From Orbicella franksi (Eukaryota): DNA of 64,000 nucleotides. Each line of letters begins with the position of its first letter. Position 1 is the stretch's first letter. The notes below the pieces were generated by a model, which worked only from the letters and a program-made list of their open reading frames with translations, was not told where the DNA came from and did not search any database. Location: NCBI GenBank assembly GCA_964199315.1, contig OZ116712.1, positions 3,534,001 through 3,598,000 on the forward strand. The letters are read 5' to 3'. Shown here one piece after another: positions 2,275-26,222 of the stretch. A program made the position numbers and the translations under genes.

Positions 2275-4679
2275 TCATGTTTGTATCCTTCTCTTAGGAT
2301 CAAGCAGGGAAATCTTTGTATTCCTTTTATTTGCGTCATTTAAGATGTTTTTTGTAGGTCTTCTGATTCTACTTTTGGTATCGTACACGTGAAACTGTTT
2401 TGGCGCTAGAATATCAATAATCTTTAGATGCTTCGCGTCCTTAGTATGAGAAAGTCTTACACGCACTGGACCTTTCGATTTGATCATCTTTCCTTTGCCT
2501 TGTACGATTTGTCCATTTATGATCTTGCTTCGCAGTTGTGAGGAGTCCTCCAATGGTTTGCCATTCAACCTAATAAGAACGTTACGGAGTCCAAAGCGAA
2601 ATCTGTGAGATTTCCCTGGAATGATATCTTTCGATGCGATAGGTGGTGAAAAGTTTGGTTCCATTGCTGCCTTATTTTCATAAAACTGGGCCTCTGCAGT
2701 GCTCATCTGGGAGATTTTAAAGTCTGAATGAGGATTGTCTGGAGGAGGTTTTGGCTCATTTTGAGGTTTCGGTAAAATATGTTCTTTGAGGGCCGACGAA
2801 GGCGACATCAGCTGATACCTTGAAAACGTTTGGGCGTTCAACTGAGTTGGGATCATCGTGTTCACAGGCGAGAAGAATTTAGGAATTTGAACGGGATGGG
2901 GCATAAAACGGGCCATGGCTTGAGGACTGAACTGTTGCCAGTTTCTTTGTGGAGTAGAACGTCCTTGTTGTGGCTCCATTTCTTGGTCATCCCTATCATC
3001 CTCGTCTTGACTGGTGACTTGGTCATCCTCTGCTCCTGGTCCGTGTGTCCCATATGCCCTACCCGTGGCATCTTCAGTAGATTCATCTTCTGGTTCCTCT
3101 GTATCCTCACCCTCTTCGTCTGAAGGCCCCTCTTCCTCTCTAGAATATGGCTGCTCTGGCTGCTCTAGCTGCTCTTGCTGTTCCGGCTGATCATCTGATG
3201 TTTGGTCCTCCCGTGCCCTGTCGTCGTCATTTTCTTCTGCTCGTGAATCGTCATCTCTGTCGTAGTATCTGCTACTTTGATGCCTAACTTCATCATCATC
3301 ATCGTCCTCATTTCTATCGTCCTTAGGCCTTTCGTCGTCTTGTCTATCTGTGTCACGATCCAAGACCTCACTACGCACCCGCCCGTCCTCGTCTACCCAC
3401 CTGCTTGCTGGACGGATCTCTTGCTGGCTTTCCGAACTAAGCAATTCGGGTGTCATCTGCATTTCATTGGGAATGACAGGTTGCTGAATCTGTGTTAGCT
3501 GTGGCATGGGAACTTGAGGAATTTGCATCTGTGGCTGAGACTGTAGCTGGTACAACGACCGTACATCGGGTTGTTGGTTGTTAAAGAAAATCTGGCCGTC
3601 CGACTGTGAAGCCATCATGTAAGACGGGTTGATAGATTGTGTCGGAATCTGAGGAACCTGAAGTGCAGACTGTAGTAATAGTCCACTGCGAAAGATACTA
3701 GAGGGTTGTGGTGAGGTATATTCGAGAGGTGCTGCTCCGAACTGAGGAGGGGAAGCCGGAAAAGCACTCTGAGCGGTCATGGGAACAATCTGTGGATTGG
3801 AACCTGCGTTGCCATCGTACAATGGAAGTAGAAGCGTATTGGGTCGATCACCATACGATATCGATTTGGGACTAACTGGTTGAAAACGTTGCACCAGCTC
3901 TTCCGGTTGCGTTAATTGGGAAGGTCTAGAAAAGAAGAGAGGATCACGCCTTCTAAAATTCGGGAATATTTCTTCTCTAGTCTGAGCATCATTTCTGGAC
4001 AGAGGCGCCATTAAATCCCCTTGTGAGAGAGATACGACGTTTGGTGGAATATAATCGTTTTGATAAAATGTATGATGTGATCGATATCTGTGCGATTTAT
4101 ACCTATGAGGCCTTGAAGAGGGCGATCCGATTGAGCCGTACAGTCTCAAGTCTTTTTCTCGCAAACTGTTTTCACTATTATCTTCATCATCATCAAATGA
4201 GACAATGTGCAGTCCTGCTCTGCGATGTCCCTTGAAGTCATTTGAATGTTTATCGCTAGCATGGGCTTTGACAAGTGGATGTCCTACTTTTACCATTTGG
4301 TCCCCCTCATTTTCTTCCTCATTTGCCAAGCCATCATCAGAAAGAACCTCATAAGCATCACTCTTTTTCACATTTTCTTGGATTTCAGGTGGTCCATTTT
4401 CTTTCTTAACAGATTGCTCCTTTAGTGCAGGTTCGGGATACGCGGACGAATCTTCGTAATGGCCAGCCTTAGGGATTCCTTTGAAAACATTTCCTTCTGC
4501 AGACAAACTTTTTCCATGTTTCTCTATGTTTGACATGGTCTCTCCTTCCCTGTTTCTCTTATGTGTTAAGTCATCTCGAAGGAATATTATTTCCTGCCTT
4601 TTGCGGGATTTACTGTTTGTGATGTTAGAGCCATGGGATATTCCAACTTCACCAACTGCTACTTTTGATAGCGTGGTTG
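2275..4679 (-). CDS. Gene A: large terminal exon (~800 aa) of a probably secreted low-complexity protein (Pro/Gln-rich, Asp/Glu-rich, basic C-terminus)
   Basis: The 753-aa ORF stays open upstream of its ATG to a phase-1 acceptor (ttttag|CA ACC ACG at 4680/4679). It has a D/E/R/Q-rich block, a P/Q block and a K/R-rich tail. The upstream signal-peptide exon was not found; secretion is inferred from genes B and C. Confidence 0.75.
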
Positions 4680-4956
4680 CTAAAATTTACAAAAAAGATG
4701 TTGTAAGCGAAATGTAACAAAAGTGCAATAAAGCAAACGAATGTGCAATGTCAAGAAATGGCAACATAACAGTCATAAAAAAATTCTTAATGCAATCTCA
4801 AGGTTTTAACCTTGCGTGGTTGCTAAAATTTACAAAAAAGATGTTGTAAGCGAAATGTAACAAAAGTGCAATAAAGCAAACGAATGTGCAATGTCAAGAA
4901 ATGGCAACATAACAGTCATAAAAAAATTCTTAATGCAATCTCAAGGTTTTAACCTT
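4671..4956. repeat. Tandem duplication, 2 x 143 bp, spanning the gene A splice acceptor
   Basis: 4671-4813 and 4814-4956 appear identical (gcgtggttgctaaaatttac...aggttttaacctt). Confidence 0.95.
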
Positions 4957-6468
4957 TTTGATCAATGTTGAAGTCGTTCTTAGCTGTTGCACACTTGAAA
5001 TAATTGTCACCTGAGGGGAATACAATTTACCACCATGGAGCTACTTCATTATAGAAAAGTAATATGGCCCTGGTTACACTTTTTTAAAAATAAAATTTAC
5101 GATTAATACTTTCTTTTAAGACATGGTTAAAGGCCGATAACCAGCGTCTGGAGAAAGAACCAAAACTTCGCTCGTTCCGCCCACTTCATAGCATTGTTTG
5201 TATAAAGTGCATAGAGTTATGGAACAAATAGTGTTAATTGACTTCAACATCATGACTGTACTTTAACCCAGAGAAGTAAACATAGAAAATTGTGCCGTTT
5301 TAGTTATTCTGTAGTAGAAGGGAATTTATGGTATTAGGAAATGCGACATAAGACAGTGACCACAACAACATGCGTCGACGTCAGCCATCTTTAACAAAGG
5401 CAGCGATGCGTATGTAACTGTTGAGGTTGGCCTGATTTCGCTATTCGCTTTATCGACCTGATCGATGCGCGAAGATACGTTTTGAGGCTAACAGAAACCT
5501 CTGCTTCTAAAAGAATTTTGTCGTGACAATTTATTTAAGTACATTCGCGAACAAACACAAACAACTCTTAAATAATCTGCCGTTAAGATATCGTCCAAGA
5601 TTCAGATCACAAACCTGTTAACACTGCTTGTAGAACAAACAATATGGAAGTCCATTTGGCTTTCGACACCATAACGACTCATTCAGTCCGTTCAATAATT
5701 TTTCACATTTCGAGAATTACGTTTTTTCGACAAAAGAATCCATGTTTTGAGAAGAAAGGATCAAACAATAAATCGAATGATGTAATAACAGAATTGGTCA
5801 CGTGACTAAGTTCCCTGGAAAATGAACGTGAAAGGGGAAAAGATAATTAATTGGAACCCCGGTCTATACCGGGTCGTTATGGGACTATTAATTGACTTAG
5901 ATTTCATAAATTTACACAGTGGCAAAACTGTCATTAAGTTTACTTAAATCCGTAAATAAATCTAATTTCCTCCTGATGATCTCCAGCCAAGTTGACTTCT
6001 GTATACGAAGAACTTATTTCACTAATTGCACTAGATATTAGTAAATATTATTAGTAAACAAATATCTCCTCTGATCAGATTGGTGAAAACTAGAGGAAAC
6101 AGTAATCTTTGCCAGGGGAGTCAAAAGGCGAAACAAACCACCTGCTTTATTCGTCGGACCGTTCTAAACTTACAATTCGTAATCTACTGTAAAATGGTCA
6201 CTTTTCCACTTTTTGACTTTAATGTCTGACCTTTCTACTTTACAGATATAAAAACAGCATGAAAAGAATATAATATCAAGATCAAAGTCCCAACAAATTC
6301 TCTTTAACCACAACAAACTTGTTCAGACAAAACAAGGAAGATGATTTGACGTCAGAAAGTGTGAAATATTAATCGGTCGTGAATTCGATGTTCTCGACAC
6401 CCGTAGAAAACACCGGCTGGTTTAAGTTTATAAATGCAGCCTTATGTTGGACGTATTTTTCTTGTAAA

Positions 6469-25185: not shown

Positions 25186-25225
<40 letters not shown>

Positions 25226-26222
25226 CTGCGAAAGAGGTTTGGATACCCGGTCTTAATTAGCATAGATTTTGACGATTTTACTTCTCCGTTTACTCCTTAG
25301 TTTTTGTTTCGATTAAGAAGATATATCAAACACTCAAGACAGTGTTTTATCCAAACATCTCGAATTTCGTCAAAAATACTCCGCTGCGCGTCGTCTTTTC
25401 AACTCTCTTCTCGGTTGTTGGATATCCCGATGAAACACTGTCTCTCGTGTTTGATATAATACTTAAAATACCACCACGGCTAAAATGGTCTAACATAAGC
25501 CGGTTACCGCCTATTGGCAAACTACTGAGAGATAGGTAGCGGCAACCATCGCTCGATATTAAACCCTCAGAGAGCGAGCATGACTTTGATGCATTGCTGT
25601 TTGGAAAGACAAGACAAGACAAGATATCACGAGTTAAGCAAAAATGTGATGAAATCATCGGTAGGTCATATGTTTAACAGATCATCCGCTGAAGAGGCCC
25701 TTGGTTCAGATCCTTCTCCCTGCTACTGCATGAGTCTATGCTTGGTGGTATCAAATTCAATTTCGCCTCATTAAATAGTCACATGGTTAGTCTTCCACCA
25801 GTTGGGATCTTTAACAAGTTCCTGCTCAAGTTATAATATTTGTTTTTGCTTATTTTTAGTGTCCCTAATTAGACAGAAGTGCTAAACACTTCGACTCTGA
25901 AATATAGTGATTTTATTTATTTATTTATTTTCACCACACCCTTGAGTAACAAAATATTTTACGACACGTTAAATGTACAGTACATTAAAATGATTTTTTC
26001 CCAACATTTTGCGCGCCTTCTTTTAACACAAAAATACAAAAATACATCGTTTTACCATTGCCTGTGGGTCTTATCTCTTAGAGCTGTATTGTCTCTTGTC
26101 TTTTTCCTTGTTTTTAGTTTCTGCATGATATTTTATTTTCCCTTACAGAACACATACCCGCTCGTCGAGGTGGAATTGCTCGTCTTCCAAACCCGAAGCG
26201 TTTCTTGGCAGGAAAACATTGA
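16985..26222 (+). CDS. Gene D: multi-exon, probably secreted Gly/Met/Asn-rich protein with a C-terminal WSC-like domain (>=927 aa)
   Basis: Exons 16985-18067, 18547-19055, 19651-19872, 20211-20397, 21032-21322, 22211-22243, 24064-24114, 24375-24416, 24873-25163, 26149-26222. All introns are GT-AG with matching phases (1,0,0,1,1,1,1,1,1). Total 2783 nt plus 1 nt from an upstream exon gives 928 codons ending in TGA. The 18067 donor (GTGGGT) is the weakest junction. Confidence 0.7.
23355..23755. mobile_element. TA-flanked MITE (401 bp), Tc1/mariner-like, in a gene D intron
   Basis: TA|CATTACTTGCaaaaaatctcggacg ... cgtccgaaatttttaGCAAGTAATG|TA, with several subterminal gtccgaaa/tttcggac motifs. 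Confidence 0.85.
24873..25163 (+). other. Exon encoding a WSC-like (putative carbohydrate-binding) domain of gene D
   Basis: DYFSIGCWRDQPERALPSLEG..AIKKCSTIARVQGFPAFALENGGQCLGG..YNMYGASSACKPDGRGGPWSMEVY follows the WSC pattern GC[WY]xD..R..C..G[FY]..G..C..YG..C..GG..VY. The exon is phase 1-1. Confidence 0.75.
25323..25457. mobile_element. Short palindromic MITE (~135 bp); other copies at 41804-41945 and ~56628-57130
   Basis: TIR atatcaaacac..agacagtgttt / aaacactgtct..gtgtttgatat. The family recurs in the window. Confidence 0.8.

Follow-up and report, generated by a model that had tools for sequence, protein, structure and literature searches.

Four neighbouring genes for predicted secreted, largely disordered, anthozoan-restricted proteins in the coral Orbicella franksi

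Introduction

Several described systems resemble parts of the locus reported here, a set of four neighbouring genes (A, B, C and D) in a 64,000-nucleotide stretch of the genome of Orbicella franksi (GenBank assembly GCA_964199315.1, contig OZ116712.1, positions 3,534,001 to 3,598,000 of the forward strand), hereafter called the window. In the vertebrate SCPP cluster, which comprises caseins, enamel and SIBLING proteins, tandemly arranged genes encode secreted, disordered and cysteine-poor proteins with Pro/Gln-rich and acidic stretches; in each of them a short exon carries the signal peptide, and mutual alignment of the members fails. Bidirectional gene pairs, which are transcribed divergently, consist in their classical form mostly of housekeeping genes. 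WSC proteins are recognized by the Pfam profile PF01822, and the classical WSC domain has eight cysteines. Finally, cnidoin, an elastomer of Hydra nematocysts, is a Gly-rich and unusually Met-rich disordered protein (17% Met), flanked at either end by minicollagen-type Cys-rich domains and containing a Cys-/Gln-rich GCGQQ repeat (PMC4321713).

Genes A to D occupy 24 kb of the window (positions 2275-26222, the end points being the stop codons of A and D) in the arrangement A(-) B(+) C(+) D(+). The explanation that we favour, with modest confidence, is that they form a co-regulated neighbourhood of unrelated, single-copy and anthozoan-restricted genes whose products would be secreted and largely disordered. 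The evidence on which it is built comes from the gene models and their transcription, from purifying selection, from synteny which reaches the sea anemone Nematostella, and from the lack of similarity among the four proteins.

Gene models, transcription and selection

All four genes have open frames and canonical GT/AG introns, and each begins with a signal-peptide exon of 58-67 coding nucleotides which ends in phase 1 and precedes the main exon or exons (Table 1). A (820 residues, minus strand) and B (514 residues, plus strand) have two coding exons each, C (plus strand) encodes a small protein of 138 residues, and D (1026 residues, plus strand) consists of 14 coding exons and a non-coding leader exon, 15 exons in all. 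An original prediction, made from the DNA letters alone, had placed four genes in this interval, with phase-1 signal-peptide exons in B and C and big exons starting at phase-1 acceptors in A and D. Splice sites, reading frames, RNA and orthologues bear out this layout, and A and D additionally possess signal exons of their own.

The signal peptides are predicted from hydrophobic N-termini, with a maximum 9-residue hydropathy of 1.7-3.2, and from orthologous RefSeq models in which these hydrophobic cores are kept. RefSeq proteins of Stylophora and Oculina share the signal-peptide starts of A, B and C, with the same exons following. The products of A to D are, on this basis, predicted to be secreted.

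Coral RNA and DNA runs contain sequence of this stretch, and transcript support was obtained for the models as follows. A sequence is present in 13 RNA runs and B sequence in 14, with six runs common to both, and D sequence occurs in three RNA contig runs in which A and B were also detected. RNA contigs of three runs, examined over 19000-24999, confirm all eleven D junctions from exon 3 to exon 13, those of exons 4-6 being seen in runs X6, X1 and X3; the final junction, 25163>26149, lies outside this stretch. Exon 9 of D (22683-22769, 87 bp) is an optional cassette, as the junctions 22243>22683 and 22243>23167 are both present in two RNA runs, and its conservation is poor in the most distant coral. 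At the 5' end of D, a non-coding block, near 14864-14971, is spliced to the exon carrying the start codon, and that exon to exon 2, in L009, a transcript contig from a related coral. This block (14700-15004) shows about 80% column identity over four corals, the flanking DNA being unalignable, and because it is spliced to the start-codon exon in L009, it is interpreted as the promoter-proximal region and leader exon of D. The phase-1 donor of D exon 2 is conserved in two distant corals (L008 and L010).

Purifying selection was found on every exon tested, low-complexity ones included, with ratios of nonsynonymous to synonymous substitution rates (dN/dS) of 0.02-0.43, and exon 4 of D retains 89% amino-acid identity with the most distant coral. 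In their own genome, the C-terminal part of A, the N-terminal part of B, C, and exon 4 of D are single-copy.

The four proteins are hydrophilic (grand average of hydropathy -0.6 to -1.1) and poor in cysteine, with 0, 2, 2 and 4 Cys in A, B, C and D, respectively, the two of C lying in its signal peptide and the four of D in the WSC-like exon described below. They are probably largely disordered. The K/R-rich ends reported earlier for A, B and D are indeed found, with 11, 15 and 9 basic residues among the last 40. The large low-complexity exons claimed alongside them are confined to D, where exons 2-3 are of low complexity in the strict sense; low-entropy 12-mers amount to 4% in A and 2% in B, and C, with an acidic second exon of only 118 codons, has none. 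No Pfam match was obtained on any exon or orthologue of A to D, a sub-threshold WSC match in D excepted, and no Rfam match in positions 1-27000 of the window. In agreement with the earlier failure to recognize a named family, the proteins are "uncharacterized" in every database source, while their gene models are conserved and transcribed.

Orthologues, synteny and the cause of the linkage

Protein A has 96 relatives, all of them stony corals where named, and a search seeded on its C-terminal part adds two proteins, one of full length from Nematostella (A7RXN5 / XP_032241474.2) and one from the hexacoral L012. For B, 24 coral relatives were found in addition to orthologues in Nematostella and L012, its N-terminal ~95 residues being conserved out to Nematostella. 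Orthologues of C occur in Stylophora and L012, and orthologous D sequence in L004, L008 and L010. A representative-library search with D exon 2 returned ten relatives, which are single-exon open reading frame (ORF) fragments from coral assemblies, and no full-length D protein; the matches of the metagenome scan are genomic contigs, not transcripts. In the tree of protein A, the window copy groups with Oculina and Desmophyllum (robust clade stony corals), and L002/L008 branches outside both main coral clades.

L001, L002/L008 and L004 show the identical order and orientation, A(-)B(+)C(+)D(+), as does the gene list of a fifth assembly, and L010 has the D exons in the same order. In Nematostella, A and the B orthologue (hidden Markov model E 5e-33) are arranged head to head, their annotated starts being ~960 bp apart. 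In L012, a hexacoral which looks non-scleractinian, B (E 5e-44) and C (E 3e-17) are placed beyond A in the expected order and orientation. As judged from this shared arrangement, the head-to-head A/B pair is older than the split between anemones and stony corals. The neighbourhood would thus show layers of age, with the A/B pair preceding that split, A-B-C present in another hexacoral, and A-B-C-D found across stony corals.

Shared regulation would be the most likely cause of this linkage, through a bidirectional A/B promoter and nearby common elements. The most serious alternative, which we nevertheless consider unlikely, is that A to D are functionally unconnected and have stayed adjacent only through slow anthozoan rearrangement, with no regulation in common. 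Some of the points that weigh against a co-regulated neighbourhood are also those that would favour this alternative: 1) C and D were not found within ~6 kb past B in the Nematostella DNA examined, so that the block of four may have arisen later than the A/B pair, and 2) the A/B spacer has no conserved non-coding block in a distant coral at the blastn level. The alternative would also be favoured by the lack of a sequence relationship among the four proteins. As regards the co-regulated neighbourhood, coral genomes generally keep gene order well, and part of the A-D synteny may therefore be neutral; the signal peptides are predicted from the two lines of evidence given above; and no cell-type, tissue or proteome data linked to A to D were found in the literature. 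Against a fortuitous adjacency stand the head-to-head position of A and B, less than 1 kb apart and kept from corals to Nematostella, the retention of A-B-C in L012, and the finding of A, B and D together in the same RNA runs. Furthermore, all four neighbours appear to be of the same unusual kind, namely secreted, disordered and taxon-restricted.

Relationship among the four proteins

The original prediction regarded A to D as an old tandem family of secreted disordered proteins conserving only linear motifs. While hydrophilic, Cys-poor sequences with predicted signal peptides agree with the description of the products, the descent from one family does not emerge from the comparisons. Profile-profile alignment with hhalign, using the ortholog alignments of each gene, gives probabilities of 0.2-0.7% for all six pairs, and pairwise Smith-Waterman alignment against local shuffles gives p >= 0.09 for every pair, in line with the earlier remark that the bodies do not align. 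The best hhalign pair is A versus B (E 0.08-0.14), in which residues 668-698 of A fall on residues 80-110 of B, exactly at the second of the two motifs that had been noted. The best score exceeds that of reversed controls (23.8 vs 16.0), and 7.5% of column-shuffled B alignments reach it (p ~0.075, for the A-B pair only).

Both motifs are present as described. The first, AHASDK, occurs in A (4266..4249) and D (19756-19773), all six codons differing synonymously, and a shared 6-mer arises in ~3% of A-D shuffles (p ~0.03) before correction for six pairs. In D, AHASDK does not vary, but among 98 A proteins only 41 have the exact form, all from close relatives of O. franksi. A few of the distant orthologues of A show a looser core, H-[AST]-S-D; AHASDK and this core are both absent from A of Stylophora, Acropora, Montipora, Oculina, L012 and Nematostella. 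The second motif, S-P-A-[E/Q], is found in A (from 2706, minus strand), in B (from 7630) and partially in D (from 19804), and the island that contains it is conserved in the orthologues of all three. In AlphaFold2 models, the Ser of S-[PT]-A-[EQ] directly precedes a predicted helix, at residues 21-31 of the A model (after S20) and at residues 42-52 and 69-78 of the B model (after S41 and S68). The pattern S/T-x-x-E is a classical helix capping box; taken as an ordinary helix N-cap, S-P-A-[E/Q] can recur in A and B with no need of common descent. The shared motifs do not exceed what chance would produce.

It could still be argued that A to D are relics of one ancient tandem duplication family, SCPP-like, which have kept their structure and a few linear motifs. 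Adjacency, the same layout of a short phase-1 signal exon followed by a large exon, the similar hydrophilic and Cys-poor make-up, the basic tails of A, B and D, the placement of the best hhalign matches at the noted motifs, and the recurrence of a loose H-[AST]-S-D core in several of the distant orthologues of A would all suit such a history. However, each gene is conserved among its own orthologues out to Nematostella, yet no similarity is detected between the genes; S-x-E sites show no enrichment, S-P-A-[E/Q] coincides with predicted helix N-caps, and neither the profile comparisons nor the permutation and shuffling results reported above separate the pairs from chance. What speaks for a common origin is then only adjacency and the phase-1 signal exon, and since phase-1 signal exons are common in secreted-protein genes, this layout and adjacency count for little. 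By analogy with the SCPP members, which do not align mutually either, a common origin would be imaginable despite the lack of similarity; the family interpretation is not supported by these data, and we consider it quite unlikely.

Features of the individual genes

The coding exons and non-coding elements of the locus are collected in Table 1.

Table 1. Positions (in the window) of the exons and non-coding elements of genes A to D.
Feature	Position	Strand	Evidence
A exon 1: start codon and predicted signal peptide, 19 codons + 1 nt, phase 1, GT donor	5672..5615	-	N-terminus nearly identical in Oculina and Stylophora RefSeq models
A exon 2: phase-1 acceptor, 800 codons and stop	4679..2275	-	96 orthologues; dN/dS 0.20; 13 RNA runs
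A/B spacer: 796 bp between divergent start codons, candidate bidirectional promoter	5673-6468	.	Head-to-head order kept in L001, L002, L012 and Nematostella (L011/L024)
B exon 1: predicted signal peptide, phase 1, 67 coding nt	6469-6535	+	N-terminal start same as Stylophora XP_022800620.1
B exon 2: basic C-terminal tail	7430-8907	+	dN/dS 0.17-0.21; 14 RNA runs
C exon 1: predicted signal peptide, phase 1, 61 coding nt	9486-9546	+	Stylophora orthologue XP_022800613.1 with same architecture
C exon 2: acidic body, 118 codons	10470-10825	+	Orthologue in L012; dN/dS 0.12-0.14
D non-coding block: promoter-proximal region and leader exon	14700-15004	+	Donor after 15004; 5' end undefined
D exon with start codon (16104) and predicted signal peptide, phase 1; signal part 16104-16164	16061-16164	+	Spliced signal-peptide/exon-2 protein P0128 from L009
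D coding exon 2: basic N-terminal part, then G/T/L/S/N-rich low-complexity part	16985-18067	+	dN/dS 0.43 and 0.10
D coding exon 3: G/M/N-rich, 39% G, 16% M, poly-G and GNGM repeats	18547-19055	+	Junction 19055>19651 in RNA contigs
D coding exons 4-6: charged, partly helical-looking, highly conserved	19651-19872, 20211-20397, 21032-21322	+	dN/dS 0.02-0.06
D small phase-1/phase-1 exons	21905-21949, 22211-22243, 22683-22769, 23167-23271, 24064-24114, 24375-24416	+	All junctions in RNA contigs
D WSC-like domain exon, 4 Cys	24873-25163	+	Junction 24416>24873 in RNA
D last coding exon: basic tail and stop	26149-26222	+	Open frame, AG acceptor, conserved in L004

Exon 2 of A encodes, besides a P/Q-rich stretch and an acidic (Asp/Glu-rich) one, a basic tail and a C-terminal region which is conserved and beta-rich. 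The alignment of the C-terminal region (A3) has a mean column identity of 74%, and the AlphaFold2 model of this region is a small beta-rich unit of moderate confidence (predicted local distance difference test 62, predicted template modelling score 0.38) with no fold match in PDB or Swiss-Prot. An AlphaFold cluster search with the model returned a Pocillopora orthologue, automatically named PDZ protein, and one entry of 28% identity. Given the moderate model and the lack of PDB and Swiss-Prot matches, no fold was assigned. In the sole intron of A, two copies of a 143-bp sequence, 100% identical, stand in tandem (4671-4956). The Logan-derived protein P0001 reads through this intron, and its N-terminus is for this reason not real coding sequence. 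In an Oculina isoform of A (X2; P0049 vs P0153), the signal exon is joined to an internal acceptor of the big exon, with ~60 N-terminal residues missing, and by analogy the A gene of the window may be spliced in the same way. A granin-like protein was considered as a candidate for A.

The spacer between A and B is a putative bidirectional promoter. In the AlphaFold2 model of the N-terminal region of B, the helices are separate and there is no compact fold (predicted template modelling score 0.24). The mature C protein is acidic (isoelectric point 4.1). It contains one P-G-G-R-G site (10520-10560), which is kept in the window, Stylophora and L008, L012 having G-P-G-G-R-G, and which could be a single amidation or cleavage site. 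A neuropeptide precursor was considered for C and set aside, as the site occurs once and the remainder of the protein is equally conserved.

In D, the second part of exon 2 (exon 2b) contains 23% Gly and is rich in Leu, Ser and Thr. The penultimate exon of D scores 23.7 bits (E 5.6e-5) against Pfam WSC (PF01822), below the gathering cut-off of 27.8. It has at least 149 paralogues in its own genome, which form long tandem arrays, and five of these paralogues match WSC only, at 21.1-30.4 bits, some of them passing the Pfam cut-off. The exon is labelled "WSC-like" because its own score is below the cut-off, yet its paralogues match WSC alone. The arrays represent a large expansion of the domain in O. 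franksi. One array, on C10 (30099217-30108433), has copies ~1.27 kb apart, and others lie on C13, C14, C1 and C15, with 40-53% identity to the D exon.

Within D, the intron stretch 23400-23800 reaches a summed RNA contig depth of up to 187 with many loose ends, and is probably a dispersed repeat which is transcribed elsewhere. Directly downstream of D, an intronless ORF on the minus strand (27605-28582) encodes a rhodopsin-type G protein-coupled receptor (Pfam 7tm_1, E 1.2e-25).

Possible functions

If A to D form a co-regulated neighbourhood of unrelated genes, their products would be made and secreted together by soft-tissue cells, and would act in soft-tissue extracellular material or secretory content. 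Such action might proceed through conserved islands, namely short N-capped helices in A, B and D, the small beta-rich C-terminal region of A, and glycan binding by the WSC-like domain of D. The basic tails could hold polyanions, and the G/T/L-rich and G/M-rich spacers of D may be flexible or elastomer-like. Matrix, mucus and cnidocyte roles may all be considered as candidates. No mention of the Stylophora, Acropora or Nematostella accessions of A, B or C was found in the literature.

A bolder version would see in A to D an ancient anthozoan secretory locus which acts jointly, either as a diverged SCPP-like family or as a co-secreted matrix, the S-P-A-[E/Q]..F and H-A-S-D islands being genuinely shared motifs that a single processing enzyme or binding partner recognises. 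This we hold to be quite unlikely.

The original prediction also proposed the skeletal organic matrix. In such a role, A to D would be released by calicoblasts and control aragonite deposition. The long Asp/Glu-rich and P/Q-rich stretches of A would fit such a role, and MEPE appears among the language-model look-alikes of B in a protein atlas; however, these look-alikes are at chance level (0.76-0.80, MEPE at 0.76), and C has none. Phosphorylation-type S-x-[ED] sites are not enriched, with 11, 6, 1 and 7 observed in A, B, C and D against 12.6, 7.1, 1.9 and 6.6 expected. The genes are not restricted to calcifiers either, as the non-calcifying Nematostella has full-length A and an adjoining B orthologue, and L012 has A-B-C. 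The Stylophora skeletal proteome table, which gives accession numbers, lists none of the Stylophora A, B and C accessions (XP_022800609-13, XP_022800620, PFX19303/4), nor indeed any XP_0228006xx or PFX193xx accession (PMC7115838). None of the Acropora cluster members that have a name is called a skeletal-matrix protein. Owing to the anemone orthologues and the absence of A, B and C from the Stylophora skeletal proteome, a skeletal matrix role is disfavoured and appears very improbable.

The present work thus provides well-supported models of four genes for proteins uncharacterised in databases, including D with its one optional exon. These proteins are old, constrained and restricted to anthozoans, and can be taken off the list of likely coral-specific skeleton proteins. 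With the A/B pair, lineage-restricted and presumably secreted proteins offer a concrete example of conserved microsynteny that can be put to the test, and Nematostella can serve as a tractable model in which to study the function of these genes.

Comparison with known systems

The likeness of D to cnidoin concerns exon 3, whose Gly and Met contents (Table 1) recall the composition of the Hydra elastomer. This exon lacks Cys, Gln is not among its commonest residues, and the GCGQQ repeat and minicollagen-type terminal Cys-rich domains are absent, all four Cys of D being accounted for by the WSC-like exon and A having none; the resemblance is thus compositional only. As regards WSC proteins, the penultimate exon of D matches their profile alone and belongs to a large family of similar exons, but it has four cysteines and a sub-cut-off score, and the remainder of D resembles no WSC protein.

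At the level of the whole locus, A to D share with the SCPP cluster the adjacency of genes for predicted secreted, disordered and Cys-poor proteins with P/Q-rich and acidic stretches, the short signal-peptide exon of each gene, and the lack of mutual alignment. They differ in that the introns of SCPP genes are in phase 0 and S-x-E phosphorylation clusters are present there, whereas A to D end their signal exons in phase 1 and show no enrichment of S-x-[ED]; moreover, A to D have no link to mineralised tissue, and their common descent is unsupported. The closest parallel for A and B is with bidirectional gene pairs, with which they share divergent transcription from nearby starts and an arrangement kept from corals to Nematostella. 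While the classical pairs are mostly housekeeping genes, A and B would represent secreted, taxon-restricted proteins which putatively share a promoter.

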